Sequence record: LC597490.1
DNA length: 64,000 bases
Reading direction: 5' to 3' (one strand)
Shown: positions 3,248 to 48,800 of the stretch, piece after piece
How positions within the stretch are numbered: the first letter of the stretch is position 1
How the letters are laid out: each line of letters starts with the position of its first letter
Program-made: the position numbers and the translations under genes
Notes under the pieces: model-generated
Told to the model about the DNA's origin: nothing
What the model saw: the letters and a program-made list of their open reading frames with translations, nothing else
The model's database searches: none

Positions 3248-3592
3248 ATGGAGCTAGATCGAGACGAGATTATCTATCTGAAGTTAATGTTAATAGCAGG
3301 GGAAAGTTACATGGCTATTCGACAAAGAATGGGTACGAATTGTACGACAATTTATAAAATCGCTACATCCCAAATGTATGACGTCGTTTACGTACCTGAA
3401 TTTGATGAAGCCATGGAAGAAAGAACACAGATGATGACAGAAACATTTCCTCTATTAAATGAAAAGGAAGTTTCTGAATTATGTATTGGAAGATATATGG
3501 GTGACAGTATTATGTCACTTGCTGAGAAGTATGGTATATCTTCGCAGTATGTGCAGCAAGTTATTAACAAGTACAAGGAAATTTACATCTAA
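3248..3592 (+). CDS. double HTH-like DNA-binding protein
   Basis: two HTH-like units (GESYMAIRQRMGTNCTTIYKI; GDSIMSLAEKYGISSQYVQQVI). Confidence 0.65.
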   Translation: MELDRDEIIYLKLMLIAGESYMAIRQRMGTNCTTIYKIATSQMYDVVYVPEFDEAMEERTQMMTETFPLLNEKEVSELCIGRYMGDSIMSLAEKYGISSQYVQQVINKYKEIYI

Positions 3593-5655: not shown

Positions 5656-6165
5656 ATGATTACAGCTGAAGGTATGTTTTTATTAAGTAAAGATCGAAAT
5701 GGAGAATCTTATCTCGTTAAACGTGGTGATCGTATGTATAATGTACAAGCCACGAAACGAGTTAATACTCCACCTAGAGATTGGTTTCGAATTGGTGATA
5801 CGATTACCCTTGGTGGGGGTACTATTAACGCAGGTGCGATTAATGGGGGTACGCTTCGAGTAACTGGTGACTCTGAACGTTTAACTACTGTCAGTACTGG
5901 TGAAATGGTTGGGGAATTACCAGCACGTTCAACAACTTCTACAGACAACACAGATGATGGTGTTATCAACCATGCGGAGCCACAGTACTGTCAGTTTTCA
6001 TTTAGGAGAGAAGAAAGCCTTAGCACACTTGCTACACTGAAGCGTTTTGATGATGAAACCGAAAGTCAATTTATAGCCAGATTCCATGAATTATTAAATA
6101 TTCTTGCGCCATATAACAATGATGATGCTCTTACTTCTATGCGACATGAGGAGTCTTTAAGTTAA
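5656..6165 (+). CDS. hypothetical protein
   Basis: ORF track frame; ATG 5656 after AAGGGAG. Confidence 0.65.
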   Translation: MITAEGMFLLSKDRNGESYLVKRGDRMYNVQATKRVNTPPRDWFRIGDTITLGGGTINAGAINGGTLRVTGDSERLTTVSTGEMVGELPARSTTSTDNTDDGVINHAEPQYCQFSFRREESLSTLATLKRFDDETESQFIARFHELLNILAPYNNDDALTSMRHEESLS

Positions 6166-7644
6166 TGATAAGCATTCGCTTTCAAGACCCTTACATTATT
6201 TTAAAAACAGAAGGGCATTTAGCAAGTAATCTATACAGTGATTTTATGATGTTCGTCGAGCATAGCGGCGGCATCTTCAATCCAAATAAGTATGAGTGGT
6301 ATGTACAGAAACAACATATCGACACCATGCTTAGTCACTTTCATGAAAAACATCTGGTATGGTTTACTTCAGTGGAAGAAATAAAAGGATTAACGGAACA
6401 CTTAGTTCCTCAGTTTACTTTTTCGGATAAGCATCTTGATACAATGAAGCTATCTCCGTTCCCGTTCCAAGCGTTAGGTATTAGTTTCTTAGCAGAAATG
6501 AAGAGAGCTATTATCGGTGACAGTATGGGGCTAGGAAAAACCTTGCAAGGACTTGGTGCCTTTCATAAGTTATATCAAGATGGAATTGTTACAAAAGCAA
6601 TTGTAGCTTGTCCGACTTCACTGAAGTACCAATGGGAAGAAGAGATTCAAAAGTTCACAGATTATAAAGGATTGGTTGTAGATGGTACAACTAAGAAACG
6701 TATGAGTACATACAATGAATTTCAATCGTCTAATGAATACCAATTCTTATTAATCAATTATGAACTAGTACGAAATGATATTGATGTATTGAAGGACTTT
6801 CACTTTGATGTTCTAATATGTGATGAGGCACATCGACTTAAAAATCGTGCAGCTAAACTCACAAAGTCAGTGAAACAAATCAGTGCTGATTATCGTTTTG
6901 CATTAACAGGGACGCCATTACAAAACAGAGCCGACGAATTATTTTCCTTATTCGAGGTAATTAATCCAGAGGTACTTGGTTCATTTACTGAATTTAAAAA
7001 GAAGTATTTAGTTTATGGAACTAAGTTTAATCGTAGAGGCGTTTTAATTGGGTATAGGAAGCTAGGAGAATTAAGGAAGGCAATTGCACCTTTCTTATTA
7101 CGAAGGCTGAAGGAAGATGTATTAGATGACTTGCCACGTATTATGTATCGAAAGATAGAAGTAGATATGAATGAAACACAGCATAAACTACAAGATGTCT
7201 TGAAGAATAATGCGGCCGCTTTATCACAAGAGTTAGCTGATTGGTATGAAACCAATGAAGCGGAACATCCGAAAGAAGGACAGATTATGGGCTATCTAAA
7301 TTTAATGATGGCTGTAGCTGACCATCCTTTATTGTTCCGATTAAGTAACTCGAACATGGTAAAGAATTATCATCAATACATTGCTAGTGATTGTCGTTCA
7401 CCAAAGCTTGATGAATTAGTCGAGATGGTAGAACAATTATTAGAAGACCCACAAACGAAGATCGTTATCTTTACTCAGTTTGCTAGGATGCAAGGTCTTA
7501 TCTTAGATAGCCTAGCACCATTTGCAGAATGTGTAGCCATTAATGGTTCGATGACTGCAAAGCATAGGCAAGAAAGTTTGTCAGACTTTAGAGAGAAACC
7601 ATTCATTCGTGTTATGGTTTGTACTGACGCAGCCAACTATGGGT
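6165..7644 (+). CDS. SNF2/SWI2-family helicase, exon 1
   Basis: GDSMGLGKT, CPTSLKYQWEEEI, ICDEAHRLKN, LTGTPLQN, LRRLKEDV, SPKLDEL, VIFTQF; breaks at CTDAANYG. Confidence 0.9.
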
Positions 7645-8986
7645 CGTGTTTGGCCCTTATTTCACGAATTGCTGGAATATCCTAAAGCTATCTAGGCTAC
7701 AACGTAATCGGTAACGATAAGCGTGAATGCTTAAAAACTAGATAGATGTACAATGGACAATCAGCAGCGATGCCTCCTTAGTGATAAGGTGGAGCGTTCA
7801 GAGACTATCGAAAGTATCTTCACATTTTCAGTTAACTAAGTATTGACATAGTTGAAGGAAAAGGTTGAAATTGATATTAGTAGAGGACATTGTAAGTAAT
7901 TACATTGTTCGGCGTGAGACTCTGAAGGAGGTTGGTAATATGCCAGCAAAGATTACATTAAACGAAGTACAGTTAACTTATCTGTTTCGAGATAGAAACT
8001 GTACACTAGATGTTATTGGAGAACAAATGAATTGTTCAAGATACACTGTTGCAAAAGCTATCAAAGAATATGGATTGAAAAGAAAGTATGAAGATGAAGA
8101 GTGGTTACGTGCTACTCATCATACTCATAAGAAAACGATTGGTGACATGGCTGAAATGGCTTGTTGTGCTCGTGATACGATTCGTGTAAACATGAGAAAG
8201 TACAACATTGAAACTTTAGATGAAGTAAGATACAGTGGTGTTCGTAAGTATCGAGTAAATTATAATTACTTCGATAATATTAATAACGCTGAAAGAGCTT
8301 ACTGGTTAGGATTTATTCTTGCAGATGGAAGTATCATCAGGGAAACAACTGGTGTGCTTAGATTATCTATCCATCTAGCACATAAAGACCGTGACCATTT
8401 AGTAAAGTTTCGAGAGGCAATATTATCAGATGCCCCAATTGAAGATGGTCATACTTTTCTTAATGGTAAAAGCCATGCCTATTCAAAAATAAGAATCAAC
8501 TCAAATGATTTTTGTCTTTCTCTTATGGAAAGAGGAATTGAACCACATAAGTCTACTCGTGAAAAAGTGCCAACAGGTATTCCTGAAGAATTTGAAAAGG
8601 ACTTTATCCGAGGTTACTTTGATGGTGATGGTTGTTTCAGTTATTGGTTCGATAGCAAACGACAACAATTCGTTCGAAACTTTAATGTAATCGGAAGCCA
8701 AGAAATTGTAGATTGGATTCGTGATAGAATCTCTTCTAAGTTTAAAGCCAATGGGAAAGTAAAACCTATGGGTAAGATTTTCCGATTTGATGTAAACAGT
8801 GAAGAGACTGAAAAGGTCATGAATTGGCTCTATGAAGATGCCGATACTTACTTGCTTCGTAAGTACGATAAATACAATGAGTGGCTCTCCTTGAAGCACA
8901 GGGAAGATATAGTCCGACCTCTAGTTGAAAAGCTAGAGAGCTAGGCAGAAATGACCTAGCCCCACATAGAGTGGTGTAACAGAATG
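7645..8986 (+). mobile_element. group I self-splicing intron with homing endonuclease
   Basis: P (AATTGCTGGAA, near 7666), Q (AATCAGCAG, 7759), R (TTCAGAGACTA, 7797), S (AAGATATAGTCC, 8904); exon ends in U7644 with U-G pair in P1; terminal G8986; splicing restores NYGLNMQFAN. Confidence 0.9.
7940..8944 (+). CDS. intron-encoded LAGLIDADG homing endonuclease with N-terminal HTH-like repeats
   Basis: AYWLGFILADGSI and FIRGYFDGDGCF motifs; ATG 7940 after AAGGAGG. Confidence 0.88.
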   Translation: MPAKITLNEVQLTYLFRDRNCTLDVIGEQMNCSRYTVAKAIKEYGLKRKYEDEEWLRATHHTHKKTIGDMAEMACCARDTIRVNMRKYNIETLDEVRYSGVRKYRVNYNYFDNINNAERAYWLGFILADGSIIRETTGVLRLSIHLAHKDRDHLVKFREAILSDAPIEDGHTFLNGKSHAYSKIRINSNDFCLSLMERGIEPHKSTREKVPTGIPEEFEKDFIRGYFDGDGCFSYWFDSKRQQFVRNFNVIGSQEIVDWIRDRISSKFKANGKVKPMGKIFRFDVNSEETEKVMNWLYEDADTYLLRKYDKYNEWLSLKHREDIVRPLVEKLES

Positions 8987-9255
8987 TAAATATGCAGTTT
9001 GCAAATGTTCTTATTCATTATGACTCTCCTTGGAATCCTGCTACAAAGGAACAAAGGGATGGTCGTATCCATCGTATTGGTAGTACTCATGATTCTGTAA
9101 CGATTTATACAATGGTTACAGTAGGGAGTATTGATGAAACCATACAAGAAGTAATGAAAGAGAAGACAGCATTATCGAATCAGTTAGTAGAGAATAACGC
9201 AGCTGGTCGAAACGCTTTAAAAGAATTAATGAAATTAGCTACGGCGGGGGATTAA
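8987..9255 (+). CDS. SNF2 helicase, exon 2 (spliced product 582 aa)
   Basis: LNMQFANVLIHYDSPWNPATKEQRDGRIHRIG = SNF2 motifs V-VI; exons 1480+269 nt = 583 codons. Confidence 0.9.
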
Positions 9256-9270
9256 ATCCCCTGCTTTTTT
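9244..9270 (+). terminator. intrinsic terminator
   Basis: GCGGGGGAT-TAA-ATCCCCTGC followed by TTTTTT. Confidence 0.85.
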
Positions 9271-43345: not shown

Positions 43346-44794
43346 TTACTTCATAGTTTTTGTTTTTAATGTATAGTGCTGAACCTGTGGAGATACTGTT
43401 GCATCATCAAGTGTATTTCTACGTAAGATGATTTTCACACGGAATGTAGATACTAAATAATCATAGGAAGCTACAATTGTACCGCTACCATGATTCTTAA
43501 CAAGTTCATCATAGATTGTAGATGGTTTGAATGTTTCAGTGAAGATGAGCTTATTACCTTCTTGGTAATATTCTAATCCTTTGTAACGTTCGTCTTTTAC
43601 AAGAGAGTATGGTTTTAATAGCGGCCACTCACCTGTTTTATAATTCGTTCTATTATACATATACACTTCTTGCTTCTCATCACCAGTGAATGGTTTAACT
43701 TCACGAACAGTTTTACCATCTGGTATTGCAATCTGTGCATCTTTAATAGAAACCTCAATTGGCTTATACGAAGCCGTATTTGGATTGTATTCTTTCGTTT
43801 GTTGAATTGCCTCATAGTTTACGTAAGGGTATTTAGAAAGCATTAACGTTTTGTTATGATTCGTCCCAGTTGGGAATTCATCTACTTGTTTACGAATAGA
43901 CAATTCTTGTTGAGCAATATCTATTGTCCATGGGTTTCCATCTGGCGTGTAGTCAATTGTGTAAATACCAAACTGGTCTACACTTTCTTGTAGCTGGATT
44001 GTTCTATTACCAACTAAAGTCCAGAATCTGTTTTCTAAAACCAATCCATTCTTATAGATAACTGGTTTGAATGAAGCAGATAGACTAGCAGGGAATCGAA
44101 GTTCTGTTGTTCTCTTGCCATCAAATAGTAAACGTTCACTCTTAATGAGCTTCTGTCCTTCTGGTAAGATAGCGTGCCAATCTTTTAATGTAGGTCTAGG
44201 TACATAAGATACATAGTATTCAACAGATGTTTGCTGACTCGTACTCTTACCACCAACTTCATCAAAGATCGGATGATATTCTGCGGCCGCTAATGATACT
44301 TCCATAACGTTTCCTTCTACTTCAAAAGGCGTACTAACTGAAATAGAGTTCTCTTCATATTGTTTATGCATGAAAGAGATATTACGAAGACCGTAGATGT
44401 ATTCGAACTTTTCTTTTCCACTTTCTGATTCTTCTGCTGAAGCTGACATAGGAGAGATTGGTGGAGGTCCAGGTATTTGATTGCTCTCTGGTTTTACAGA
44501 AGATGCATACACTGGAGAAGAAGATGCTGGTGATGTTGGATTCTCTACACTCTTTACAGCAGTTTTACTTTCCTCAATCCATTTTTCAGATAGAGGATTT
44601 CGAATAATAGGAAGCTGTTCATCTTTTGGAGGAATTGATATGGTTTCATTACCACCAGAATTATCTTCCTTCTTAATTGATTCAGCATAGATTGTTTCTG
44701 TATCTACAGATTCAACTAGCTTTTGAGATGTTTCCGTCCATGTAGAATTTTCATTCTCAGGGAATGTTTCAAATACATTTCTAATCTTTGGCAT
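43346..44794 (-). CDS. putative virion structural protein
   Basis: low-complexity N-terminus, then EYIYGLRNISF...SVEYYVS; RBS GGAGG. Confidence 0.65.
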   Translation of the reverse strand: MPKIRNVFETFPENENSTWTETSQKLVESVDTETIYAESIKKEDNSGGNETISIPPKDEQLPIIRNPLSEKWIEESKTAVKSVENPTSPASSSPVYASSVKPESNQIPGPPPISPMSASAEESESGKEKFEYIYGLRNISFMHKQYEENSISVSTPFEVEGNVMEVSLAAAEYHPIFDEVGGKSTSQQTSVEYYVSYVPRPTLKDWHAILPEGQKLIKSERLLFDGKRTTELRFPASLSASFKPVIYKNGLVLENRFWTLVGNRTIQLQESVDQFGIYTIDYTPDGNPWTIDIAQQELSIRKQVDEFPTGTNHNKTLMLSKYPYVNYEAIQQTKEYNPNTASYKPIEVSIKDAQIAIPDGKTVREVKPFTGDEKQEVYMYNRTNYKTGEWPLLKPYSLVKDERYKGLEYYQEGNKLIFTETFKPSTIYDELVKNHGSGTIVASYDYLVSTFRVKIILRRNTLDDATVSPQVQHYTLKTKTMK

Positions 44795-44808
44795 GTTCGC
44801 CCTCCTTC

Positions 44809-45726
44809 CTATTCATTCATTTCTTTCTTATGTTTCTCTAGTCCAATATTCTTATCATGTTGCCAATCTCCAACATACTTCTGCTCTTGTCTTTGTTTAG
44901 CTAAATCATACATGTAATACAATACTTCATCAGACCATCTTGCTGCACCTTGTTTTACAGAAGGCAACCAGCCATTTTCCATTCTCCATAAAGCTTGTTT
45001 CGTTAATTTAGCTACCTTGTCATTGTATGGTTGACGTTTGTAATTCTCTTGTCTAAATACAATTGTGAACCGTCTAGCTAATACCGCTGGGAATTGGAAC
45101 GTCATTGTTTTTACACTTGCATCCACCTTATTACGGAATACTAATTCTTTACGAGGATGGAATGTTTCAATATCTTCTTCATAAGAAATAGATACAGCTT
45201 CCATAGGTAGTTCACAGAATGGTTCGATATTGATTTCACTAACAGGTTTTGGTCTGTCAAAAGTAACGTGAATTTTTACATAAGCCCCACCTTCAGGTAA
45301 TAGCTCTTTCTCAATACCCTCAACTACTTTTTCATCTACATCAGATGGTTTCTTTCCAATCTGTTCTTTTAAAGTTAGGAAAGCCAGTTCACTAATTTCG
45401 ATTTGGGATACAGAGTTCTCTGCTCGTAAATCCATCTGTACTTCAAAGTCATGAGCAAATGGATTCAATGAGTCTCCAGCCCAAGGCCATTCATAAGGGT
45501 ACTTAGAAATGAGTCGCCATAGTAAGTCTAGTGATTCAAGTAATCTAGCACCTGGATTTGCTACACGAATTTTATCAATGGTTTCTCCAATCCGTTTATC
45601 TTTACTAGATGTAGGAACAAGTGCAGCGACTTGTTTTGCATTATCAAGAGGATGTGGAAATGTAATTTTCCATAATCCTTCTCGTTCTTGTATGGAAACG
45701 GATATAGCGTATTCTACTTTATACAT
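44809..45726 (-). CDS. putative virion structural protein
   Basis: IHVTFDRPKPVSEINIEPF...FQFPAVLARRFTIVFRQENY; RBS AAGGAGG. Confidence 0.65.
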   Translation of the reverse strand: MYKVEYAISVSIQEREGLWKITFPHPLDNAKQVAALVPTSSKDKRIGETIDKIRVANPGARLLESLDLLWRLISKYPYEWPWAGDSLNPFAHDFEVQMDLRAENSVSQIEISELAFLTLKEQIGKKPSDVDEKVVEGIEKELLPEGGAYVKIHVTFDRPKPVSEINIEPFCELPMEAVSISYEEDIETFHPRKELVFRNKVDASVKTMTFQFPAVLARRFTIVFRQENYKRQPYNDKVAKLTKQALWRMENGWLPSVKQGAARWSDEVLYYMYDLAKQRQEQKYVGDWQHDKNIGLEKHKKEMNE

Positions 45727-45748
45727 ATTTAACCTCCTTTATTTCAAT

Positions 45749-45781
45749 AAAAAAGGACGGGCAGCCGTACGCCGCCCACCC
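45749..45781 (-). terminator. GC-rich intrinsic terminator
   Basis: GGGTGGGCGGC-GTACG-GCTGCCCGTCC then T6. Confidence 0.75.
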
Positions 45782-45824
45782 CAGGAGAGAATTCAAATGG
45801 CTAAAAAGGGTTTCCCCTTGCTTA

Positions 45825-45853
45825 AAAGTAACCATTACCTATACTTCAGTCAA
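45825..45853 (-). promoter_or_regulatory. TGGT-TACNTT class promoter
   Basis: TTGACT-gaagtataggtaatggt-TACTTT (17 nt). Confidence 0.65.
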
Positions 45854-45857
45854 GATA

Positions 45858-48800
45858 TTATTTATATTTCACCCATAGTTTCGCATCAGGTAAGAAAGCC
45901 ATATAGTTAGCGGAAGACCCATCGAACTTTAATCCGAAACCACGGTCTACGCCATTCGCAATTTTATTCTGAACGAATCCAGTAACATTGACCCATTTAC
46001 CTTCGCCCCATGAGAACCAGTCTGTTACATATTCAGAAGATACAGGCGGATTATTATCTGGTCTTCTATCAGCATATTGATGGGCAACAATTCGAGCCTC
46101 ACGAGCACCAGAGTTACCACCTTTGCTGTAACGAGTAATGTATAACTGAGCATCAATAATAGTCTTGCCTCGTAATGTGTTAGCCAAGTCAGATGAGAAC
46201 CACCAAGTACCAGTACGGTTTCCGTATCCCCATGTTCCTTGCTTAACATAGATTTCGTCATCCCAATAACCATTGGCTGACCAGTTTTGTCCACCTTGAG
46301 AACTCCACTCTCTTACGTATTCTGAAGGAGGTGGTGGTGGCGGAGGTGTAGCTTCTCCATAATCTACTGTCCAGATATCATTTCTCCATGATAAGCCATC
46401 TCCCATATATCCACCGACATATGCATTTGCCCATCGAGTAACACTACCATCTGGTCTTGTGCCTTCACCTTGAACAACAGCGAAGTCAGATACAAGAATG
46501 GAGATAGGATTTCTTCCACCTTTACAGTCTTTAATATAAGCATTTGCATTGTAAATGATAGAGAAAGCCCTAGACTTCACATCATATATCTCAATAGATA
46601 CTGCACGGATATATGCCCAGCGAACACCTGTGATACCCATCTCAACTTTCTTATTTCCATACAACTTACAATACCAAATATCTACGTTAGGAGAAGCAGT
46701 AACATTGATTAGTGAATCTGTTCCTGTTTCAGCCATTGTTCTGTCTTGAGCTTGCATAATGAAATGAGCAATATACAGCTGACACATTACACCATTTACA
46801 ACAATACCAGAGTTGATGGTTTTTCGAGCACCACTGTCGTCACTTCGAACAGTTATTGCACCAGGACCCATGAATCCATTTATGAATATAGGACTGTCGA
46901 TATTCCCATTCAATTGGATGAGTTCAATCTTATTACTGATGAATTTACCCATCTGGTCAATAAAAGCTTGTATGTTTCTTTTTGGTGCTCCTCTAGTACC
47001 AGAGTTATTATCGTTTCCGTTAATAGAATCGAAGAATATTTGACCGACTGTTTTATCTGTTCCAACTACACCGCCGACAATTACATCAGCTTGTATACGA
47101 GGGAAGTAAGCACCAGTCTCATCAATTTGACCTACCGTTTCAGTTTGTCCGTTTCCGCTTTTCTTTACAACTTGTAGGAAACCATTACCTGTAGATGTAC
47201 CTAATTTCAAAGTACCACCTTGTGCTTGGTCAAAAGTAAATATTCCGCTATCGACATCAGTAACAGAAGGATGCGCCCAGTAAGAATCAATAGTAGCTGT
47301 GTTGGAATAATGATGGAAGAATCGAATAGCTACATATCTAGTATCAGGATGCATTGCATAAGCTGTGTCTGTATTCAGTCCTCTACCTATTAAGTCTGGG
47401 TCTGTTGATGTAGCAGGAAGAAGTAGTGATTCCATATCCCGCCAATTATCATACTTAGCACCAGCAGCTCCAACTAAGAAGTATGGGTTTGTTGAGCCGA
47501 ATCCACCTTCAAAGTTTCTATTAGAATAGTTAAACCATTTCATACCGATTGCTTGCTTATTCGCATTATATGCCATAACACCAAAATAGATTCTTGCAGT
47601 TGGAGTTGTATTAGGCATATATGCTGATACCTTAACACGATAAGTTTTACTCGTATTGACTTCGAACAAGCTGGAGTAAATTTGTAAGTCCGACCCTGTT
47701 GTCATTTTTAATACCTTACCATATTGACCTTTTGGATCATTAACAAGACTCATTGTGCCACCATTTCCTAGACTATAACCTTCTAGTGTTCCAGTATTAG
47801 AGAAGTTATTAACAAGGTCTTTTGCTAATACAGATAGCTCATTTGTTGTAATCGTTCCAGACTGGATATGACTTGCATTAATTGCGTTCGACTGAATATG
47901 TGTAGCGTTAATTGCATTAACAGCGATATGTGTAGTTTTAATACTGCCATCTACAATTAATTCTCCACCATTCTTTCTTCTCACTTCTACATTTGTGAAG
48001 TACCAGTTTCCGAAGTTTGCAGTTCCACCAATCTGAACAAACGCTCTTGCTCTAGTTTGAATTTCACTTGTTCCTAATGAGATTTCTCCAGAAACCCGAA
48101 TCCATTTACCACCAGTAGGAGCTTGGGTAATTACTTTCCAGTTTGGATTACTTCCATCTGTCGAAGTAAAATTCATTCCAATACCAATTGGTAATGTACT
48201 ATCCGTTGTATACACATCAGCAGATACAAAGAACTTATCGCCAGGTTGTACAGTAAACCAATTCTCACAATAAGTGTCACGTATCTGTGTGCGACCAAGA
48301 TACTTAGTCGGGCCACCTAGTGTGTTCTGAACAGCTACAACATTTGCTGTCCATCCAATAGCAGTACCATCTGCAAACTGGGGATTCGTTGCATAGTTAG
48401 TAAAATCAGATATAGCAATCTTATCAGCAGTAATTGTATTTGTTTCAATTAGTCCACCTTTGATGTAAGTAGTTCCGCCGATAGCATTCCCTTTCCATAC
48501 ATTTACTAAATCACGAGCCGTATCCCATGCAGAACCTCTATTGTTAAGAGATGTCGCAACATCAACAATAGCATCTGTTGCATCCTCAGGAGCAGGACTC
48601 CAATCTGTTGCACGATTACCAGCTTCTAGTTTTACTTGTCTAAAGCTAACAGCTGAAGCACCAGCAAAACCATTATTATCAAAACGAACATATCCTTCTC
48701 GTTCATTAGCATTGGTTCTAAATGTATAGACTAAACGAGTCCATGTCTTAGCTGGTAAATTACGAGGAGCATATTCATGAACGAAATCGAACTCTTTTGT

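Follow-up and report, generated by a model that had tools for sequence, protein, structure and literature searches.

We analysed a window of 64,000 nucleotides (nt) from sequence record LC597490.1, which is 100% identical to Bacillus phage vB_BceM_WH1 (hereafter WH1; 229.8 kb, host B. cereus) and whose coordinates are those of the record. A SNF2 helicase gene in this window very probably contains a mobile, self-splicing group I intron at positions 7645-8986, a reading drawn from sequence comparison. We establish the anatomy of the element, its exact junction, the conservation of its structure, the fold of its protein and the recurrence of its insertion site. In GenBank the intron is unannotated and the region carries three unrelated coding sequences (CDSs): gp015 (6165-7685) and gp017 (8992-9255), both labelled 'DEAD/DEAH box helicase', and gp016 (7940-8944), labelled 'recombinase family protein'. 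We read gp015 and gp017 as the two parts of a single SNF2 helicase gene and gp016 as a homing endonuclease encoded in its intron, for which the 'recombinase' label is wrong. A literature search by the phage name vB_BceM_WH1 found nothing.

The interrupted SNF2 gene and its junction

The frame that starts at 6165 encodes 506 amino acids (aa) and meets a stop at 7685. It matches Pfam SNF2-rel_dom (PF00176) with 170 bits and phrog_62 with an E-value of 5e-116. Helicase_C, on the other hand, is split: profile positions 3-78 fall in this open reading frame (ORF) and 83-110 in an 87-aa ORF at 8992-9255. Because the profile is divided between the two, the gene must be cut inside its C-terminal helicase lobe. 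Joining exon 1 (6165-7644, 493 codons and one nucleotide, ending in ...AAC TAT GGG T) to exon 2 (8987-9255, carrying the second half of motif V, motif VI and the C-terminus) gives 1749 nt, that is 582 codons and a stop. The joined product reads ...TDAANYG|LNMQFAN... across the junction, so that removal of the intron restores the host frame at a conserved motif; Helicase_C is then complete and, with motifs V and VI, follows the SNF2 N-lobe as in SNF2/SWI2 proteins. The spliced RNA is predicted to carry the junction ...AACTATGGGT/TAAATATGCAG.... Both exons lie on the plus strand, as do all other WH1 features given below, among them an intrinsic terminator-like hairpin at the end of the gene (9243-9265).

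The boundaries were fixed with phage Edson (PV796108.1), the sole close relative of WH1 in the phage collection searched. Its SNF2 allele (6168-7916) is uninterrupted, likewise 1749 nt long and collinear with exon 1; it is 90% identical to WH1 exons 1 and 2 and lacks the 1342 nt between them, and its protein shares 551 of 582 residues with the joined WH1 product. The two sequences align without a gap across the junction, GGAT|TAAATATG in Edson against GGGT|TAAATATG in WH1, and shifting the junction by one base in either direction creates a mismatch. The original prediction, a first reading of the window from its letters, had placed a group I intron in this gene with junctions at 7644/7645 and 8986/8987, inside motif V, and an open frame of 583 codons after joining. 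Both junctions are borne out by the Edson allele and by covariation in homologous introns (see below), and the site and length by the joined frame, stop codon included.

Contigs of three public sequencing runs provided three more intron-less alleles of WH1-like phages, with GGA CTG or GGA TTG at the junction. One intron-less contig comes from an RNA library; since its junction codons (GGA CTG, with C rather than U at position -1) differ from those of WH1, it most likely derives from an allele that lacks the intron rather than from spliced WH1 RNA. An oligo-dT metatranscriptome labelled 'tick metagenome' (run X2) contains a contig whose identity to the SNF2 exons of WH1 is about 98%, also with an intron-less junction.

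Ribozyme fold and covariation among homologous introns

We built a complete P1-P10 fold manually for the 1342-nt intron, with canonical pairing in all helices. The P1 hairpin (7641-7656) pairs GGGUC (7641-7645) with GGCCC (7652-7656) and sets a U7644.G7653 pair at the 5' splice site. Its loop, 7646-7651, together with G7652 acts as the internal guide of P10 and pairs with the first seven bases of exon 2 (8987-8993). P3 brings UUUCACG (7660-7666) and CGUGAGA (7913-7919) together in seven canonical pairs. The P4-P6 domain (7667-7800) comprises P4 (7670-75/7761-66), P5 (7680-82/7755-57) and a P5a-c extension that includes P5a (7688-95/7738-45) and a P5b hairpin with a GUAA loop (7711-14), followed by P6 (7767-69/7795-97) and P6a (7773-80/7785-92, GUGA loop). 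P8 is formed by a 5' strand at 7920-7931 and a 3' strand, CUCCUU...CAGGG, at 8887-8903 (7920-24 with 8899-8903; 7925-30 with 8887-92). The 3' end (8919-8986) folds into P9 (8919-26/8931-38, GAAA loop), P9.1 (8940-45/8955-60) and P9.2 (8962-65/8971-74), and terminates in G8986. The P and Q elements read AAUUGCUGGAA and AAUCAGCAGC. The R element, GUUCAGAGACUA, lies with the 5' strand of P7 (G7801, 7803-7807) at 7796-7807; the S element, AAGAUAUAGUCC, is made of J8/7 (AAGAUA) and the P7 3' strand (UAGUCC) at 8904-8915. The group I core is thus present from P3 to P8, including the guanosine-binding helix P7.

Between P7 and the 3' strand of P3 (7814-7910) stand two peripheral helices, P7.1 (7814-18/7873-77) and P7.2 (7885-95/7900-10, GUAA loop). 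With P3' at 7913-19, the intervening 105 nt form the P7.1/P7.2 pair typical of subgroup IA. P2 is found in many IA2 introns and is absent here; we therefore call the intron no more than IA-like. Most of this architecture had been anticipated by the original prediction: the P1 pairing with a U-G at the cut, P10 between 7646-7652 and the 3' exon, the P, Q, R and S elements (recovered in Rfam alignments and in our fold), the terminal G8986, and a LAGLIDADG ORF that lies between R and S and runs through S/P9 (it scores above its Pfam cut-off and ends at 8944, inside P9.1).

A covariance-model check, also proposed there, gave a divided answer. With permissive filters, Rfam model RF00028 gives one match on either side of the ORF (7578-7867, 28.6 bits, E 6e-5; 8779-8937, 17.3 bits, E 0.16), and its alignments place P4, P5, P6 and the P, Q, R and S elements. 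Neither match reaches the gathering threshold of 50 bits, since the two are parted by the 1-kb ORF in the P8 loop. Scores of 80-88 bits are obtained for ORF-less relatives with an equal P5 extension; phage introns above the threshold that have this extension include those of the Bacillus phage BpSp DNA polymerase (87.5 bits) and of Staphylococcus phage DW2 (80 bits). Standard intron detection at the gathering threshold overlooks ORF-bearing phage introns. Rfam's own choice of P3' (7809-7816) and a local P8 (7817-7858) was rejected: 7913-7919 gives seven perfect pairs with compensatory changes in relatives, and 7814-7877 is P7.1. The P7'-P9-P9.1 module also occurs in 27 other viral contigs, where tblastn finds no WH1-like SNF2 gene, which argues that the ribozyme scaffold is of a common phage type.

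Homologous introns were reached through the endonuclease, whose nearest homologues in a set of 5.8 billion proteins show 64%, 52% and about 35-45% identity. We inspected the contigs encoding eleven homologues, the nearest being ENA and Logan contigs. In L017, L018, L102, L103, L133, L135 and the 5'-truncated L104, the homologue lies inside a SNF2 gene broken after the same glycine (TDA-N-G|LN-Q); the four of these SNF2 genes that were compared are 34-46% identical to that of WH1. Four full introns could be delimited, all in metagenomic phage contigs: L017 (3789-5113), L018 (1910-3254), L102 (1207-2526) and L103 (1968-3330). Like the WH1 intron, each has a P10, starts after a U paired with G, ends in G and, once removed, restores motif V. 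In L103 the insertion point is displaced by one base in the 3' direction within this codon, GGC CU|C (1960-1975, 3325-3335), and P1 is remodelled to GGCCU/GGGCC with its U.G pair kept. The insertion codon reads GGG U in WH1, L017, L018 and L102, GGC CU in L103 and GGA in the intron-less alleles, a division that fits the requirements of P1.

Some SNF2 genes with a motif V intron are interrupted once more, at Walker A, where the break follows ...MGLG (WH1 aa 124/125). This other interruption contains a further LAGLIDADG ORF in L017 (1630-2653), and that of L133 (about 725-990) resembles an ORF-less group I core, with R at 836 and S at 926. In two IMG/VR contigs (L060:1794-4366 and L063:49-2621), the SNF2 gene is broken close to its DEAH motif (about aa 230 of WH1), with a LAGLIDADG ORF on the opposite strand between the pieces.

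RNAalifold, applied to the 5' halves of WH1 and the four delimited introns, independently recovered P1, P3 (with P3' at 7913-7919), P4, P5, P5a-c, P6, P7.1 and P7.2, with double compensatory changes in 41 of 68 pairs. P3 has such changes at five of its seven positions, P7.1 and P7.2 both vary by compensation, and the R element is nearly invariant (a single G-to-C change, in L103). In a separate control count, 93.5% of cells were canonical and 42 pairs compensatory, against about 38% and 6-11 pairs after the partners had been shifted by 1-3 columns; 500 partner permutations gave no more than 51.5% and 18 pairs. These controls are generous to the fold, since it was derived from the same five sequences. 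P9, P9.1 and P9.2 likewise vary by compensation; P9 was checked sequence by sequence, MAFFT having misaligned it in the 3' halves. P1 and P10 co-vary with the exon: P10 pairs GUGUUU with AAAUAU in WH1, AGAUU with AAUCU in L017 and AGGUUUA with UAAACUU in both L018 and L102.

Splicing would then proceed along the usual group I path. The SNF2 gene would be transcribed through the intron and the RNA would fold into an IA-like ribozyme; exogenous guanosine would attack after U7644, held in P1 by the U.G pair; P10 would align exon 2, and ligation after G8986 would restore motif V (TDAANYG-LNMQ) and the 582-aa helicase.

The endonuclease ORF forms the loop of P8, reads through J8/7, P7' and P9, and stops inside P9.1. 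Its Shine-Dalgarno sequence, GGAGG (7927-7931), is part of the P8 5' strand, whose partner (8887-8903) falls within the final codons of the ORF and borders J8/7 on its 5' side. All five introns have this arrangement (AAGGAG/CUCCUU, AGGGAU/AUCCCU, GUGAUA/UAUCAC, GGAGU/ACUCC and UUAUAGGAG/CUCUUAUAA), and the P8 duplex ranks between 0 and 6th of about 310 equal-sized ORF windows per intron (best 0-2%). The intron endonucleases of T4 are an established case in which the ribosome-binding site (RBS) is sequestered and a promoter lies inside the intron (PMC2988022). The P7.1 loop of L018 contains a perfect sigma-70 promoter (TTGACA-17-TATAAT with TG, 12/12) at 2118-2146, a short distance before the endonuclease gene; L017 and the P7.1 loop of WH1 (7843-7848) retain TTGACA, with a weak -10 box, and a promoter scan made no call at the WH1 loop (window 7843-7871). 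The place of the Shine-Dalgarno sequence in P8 suggests a likely control of endonuclease expression. Ribosomes would load on the endonuclease gene only until the P8 3' strand is transcribed; P8 formation would stop translation and leave the core overlapped by the ORF free to fold, and this shut-off would shield P7', P8 and P9 from ribosomes. We put forward tentatively, as an idea with somewhat less than even chances, a coupled RNA switch of this kind, in which translation and ribozyme folding are mutually exclusive and ordered in time, together with repeated moves of the endonuclease between free-standing and P8-loop states. If true, the endonuclease lineage would be a natural series for the assembly of mobile group I introns. 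The five-intron alignment offers a small example, open to experiment, in which translation of an endonuclease would be tied to a helix of the ribozyme core.

The endonuclease, its spread and competing explanations

The endonuclease gene (7940-8944) encodes 334 aa. The ATG at 7940 is preceded by GGAGG 8 nt upstream and opens an N-terminus, MPAK, that is conserved in homologues; the TTG at 7865 given by a mechanical ORF call was rejected in its favour. Two LAGLIDADG motifs, YWLGFILADGSI (8300-8335) and FIRGYFDGDGCF (8603-8638), contain the catalytic residues D129 and D230, invariant in 16 homologues together with G130 and D228-G231. The protein matches Pfam LAGLIDADG_3 (PF14528) with 30.4 bits against a cut-off of 22.5 and phrog_4645 over its full length (E 9e-52); within the first 90 residues there are further matches, to the DNA-binding parts of PHROGs labelled 'HNH endonuclease'. 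An AlphaFold model with a predicted local distance difference test score (pLDDT) of 89.3 shows two three-helix units, the helix-turn-helix (HTH) units at residues 9-87, and then a double alpha-beta-beta-alpha-beta-beta-alpha core, the pseudo-dimeric fold of single-chain LAGLIDADG enzymes. The top matches by fold in the PDB (Foldseek) are all single-chain LAGLIDADG proteins (bI3 maturase, I-Tsp061I, I-AniI and the I-OnuI family); a PDB search by sequence gave nothing significant. The final 14 residues or so are modelled with low confidence and correspond to the translation of J8/7-P7'-P9 (...REDIVRPLVEKLES), in which the S element is read as EDIV, a signature that recurs among homologues. At least 443 relatives were confirmed in viral contigs; IMG/VR had no close relative, with 37% identity at most.

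This endonuclease lineage tracks SNF2. Eight copies, including that of WH1, are intron-borne at the motif V site, and three are free-standing (L019/L020, L101 and L134), each with its own RBS and directly following a SNF2 gene that is intact. The WH1 endonuclease shares 64% identity with that of L017 and 52% with that of L018, more than the host exons do (44% and 43%), which points to horizontal spread. In an unrooted maximum-likelihood tree, free-standing members are interleaved with intron-borne ones: L134 is sister to L133 (support 99/97), and L019 and L101 fall inside the clade of WH1, L017, L018 and L103 (99/98). Such interleaving agrees with a path already proposed for the entry of free-standing endonuclease genes into introns (PMC3984707). 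A possible fossil of the S element in the tail of the free-standing L019 endonuclease (...EDRV...) is too weak to call. One further lineage member (L132:2220-3480) lies in a group I intron of a host gene that is not recognisably SNF2 and whose sole Pfam match is a weak one to VWA_2.

Homing would take place during mixed infection. The endonuclease would cut an intron-less SNF2 allele such as that of Edson near the insertion site, and repair from the intron-bearing copy would carry the intron into the cut allele.

Several points weigh against a self-splicing, mobile intron in WH1. Apart from the generous controls and the low Rfam scores described above, P2 is absent in all five introns, a gap of only 3 nt separating P1 from P3. 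Part of the P8/Shine-Dalgarno pairing also encodes a protein motif, EWLSL, that is itself conserved, and some of the conservation of this pairing could be owed to the protein. Edson carries five silent differences in the 24 nt upstream of the insertion site, which bears on homing into its allele. Finally, the public sequencing runs included relatives only and no run of WH1 itself, and yielded intron-less alleles but no evidence of splicing.

Is the endonuclease still driving the spread of this intron? The intron could splice while its LAGLIDADG protein is inactive or acts mainly as a maturase, the element being fixed in WH1 and no longer mobile. A maturase (bI3) and a bifunctional enzyme (I-AniI) do figure among the best structural matches, and the intron is present in only one of the two sequenced relatives, so that a recent spread is not seen. 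We nevertheless consider this unlikely: the catalytic aspartates and the wider motif residues are invariant in all 16 homologues, and a single lineage occupies a single site in SNF2 genes only 34-46% identical, besides standing free beside SNF2. Because of this shared site in divergent genes and of the free-standing copies, nuclease-driven spread explains the distribution of the lineage best.

A gene in pieces is a much less probable explanation, and we give it little credit. The intron would be decayed, or the insertion would be that of a plain endonuclease gene without splicing, and SNF2 would be made as two polypeptides of 506 and 87 aa, or be dead. This would agree with the three separate CDSs of GenBank, with the Rfam score and with an in-frame ATG (8992) that happens to lie near the start of exon 2; phages are also known to have split genes that arose by insertion of an endonuclease and still function (PMC3045599). 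However, the ATG at 8992 has no preceding Shine-Dalgarno sequence, the break falls inside motif V, and the first polypeptide would end in 13 intron-encoded residues. Moreover, none of the core helices is broken, neither P10 nor the terminal G nor the U.G pair is lost, and compensatory changes maintain them in five lineages. An intein, removed at the protein level, can be practically dismissed: LAGLIDADG_3 is indeed the intein/HO-type family and helicases often host inteins (PMC4760082), but the frames of 6165, 7940 and 8987 are in different phases with stops at 7685 and 8944 between them, Pfam finds no Hint domain, hence no in-frame Hint insertion, and a complete ribozyme is present.

Known systems and other interrupted phage genes

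The original prediction had called a LAGLIDADG intron in a SNF2 gene an uncommon pairing and insertion site. This stands in part. Phage introns mostly carry GIY-YIG, HNH, PD-(D/E)xK or EDxHD enzymes according to a 2014 review (PMC3984707), and our searches brought up no publication on an intron at motif V of SNF2. When SNF2 was searched together with group I introns, the sole find was a group II intron, in a DarB/SNF2 gene. Published work does mention introns in helicase genes of Staphylococcus phages. On the other hand, LAGLIDADG phage introns have been reported, with one case among 45 introns in a 2025 survey of Bastillevirinae (PMC11878797), and the site recurs in at least seven other contigs. 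Homologues of the WH1 endonuclease in Staphylococcus phages bear the GenBank labels 'DOD homing endonuclease' and 'intron-encoded endonuclease', and an Alicyclobacillus phage dnaE also has an intron-borne LAGLIDADG gene. LAGLIDADG genes in phage introns are therefore under-described, not unprecedented, and the novelty is a newly recognised, recurrent target site, SNF2 motif V, for an element of a known kind. This motif joins the conserved sites colonised by homing elements, with a whole LAGLIDADG lineage specialised there.

Among phage IA2-type introns (T4 td/I-TevI, the SPO1 and Bastille DNA polymerase introns, Twort), the WH1 intron shares the P7.1/P7.2 core, an ORF looped from a peripheral helix, an insertion site within the conserved catalytic motif of a gene for DNA metabolism, an endonuclease RBS hidden in RNA structure and a promoter-like element within the intron (PMC2988022). 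It differs by its LAGLIDADG enzyme in place of GIY-YIG or HNH, by the lack of P2, by its SNF2 helicase host, and by an RBS sequestered by the core helix P8 and the far end of the ORF, whereas theirs is closed by a local upstream hairpin. The WH1 protein shares its architecture with other intron-borne members of phrog_4645, the 'DOD' endonucleases of Twort-like Staphylococcus phages and the dnaE endonuclease of Alicyclobacillus phage KKP_3916, which combine an N-terminal HTH with a double LAGLIDADG in phages of Firmicutes. They are only 24-35% identical to the WH1 protein and target recA, dnaE, gyrA and other genes; in KKP_3916 the ORF stands upstream of the ribozyme core, not in P8. The bI3 maturase (2ab5), I-Tsp061I (2dch), I-AniI (1p8k) and the I-OnuI family have the same fold as the WH1 model (Foldseek E 3e-11 to 1e-8, probability 1.0), with two LAGLIDADG helices bearing the catalytic acids. 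Identity to these organellar and archaeal single-chain enzymes is 11-18%, and only the WH1 protein, from a phage, has the N-terminal tandem HTH. Finally, like the free-standing homing endonucleases that target intron sites (PMC3984707), the WH1 lineage is found both behind an intact SNF2 gene and inside a SNF2 intron.

The relatives of the endonuclease, some free-standing and some intron-borne, lend themselves to work on the entry of endonuclease genes into introns. WH1 and Edson form a natural intron-plus/intron-minus pair for studying intron-mediated competition between co-infecting phages, as reported for PhiPA3 (PMC11620839).

Other interrupted genes were met in WH1, in Edson and in further phages. 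The DNA polymerase III alpha gene of WH1, outside the window, is annotated as three CDSs (gp235-237), and each of its two gaps (195709-196432 and 197354-197756) contains one sub-threshold group I intron match (28.7 and 32.2 bits); Edson has two group I matches corresponding to these gaps, and none of these is annotated as an intron. The dnaE gene of KKP_3916 (L003, record 57581-65559) is spread over at least four 'hypothetical protein' CDSs, with unannotated group I introns at 70.6 and 41.7 bits (Rfam) that carry a LAGLIDADG endonuclease and an HNH-repeat endonuclease. In Bacillus phage Goe21 (L005, record 43681-47387), gyrA is annotated in two pieces with a LAGLIDADG-type ORF between them; no Rfam intron core was found in this insert at E 0.01 or better. 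Lastly, the jumbo Listeria phage LPJP1 has a match to group II intron domains D1-D4 at 94 bits (L006:2811-3003), near a group I-like element.

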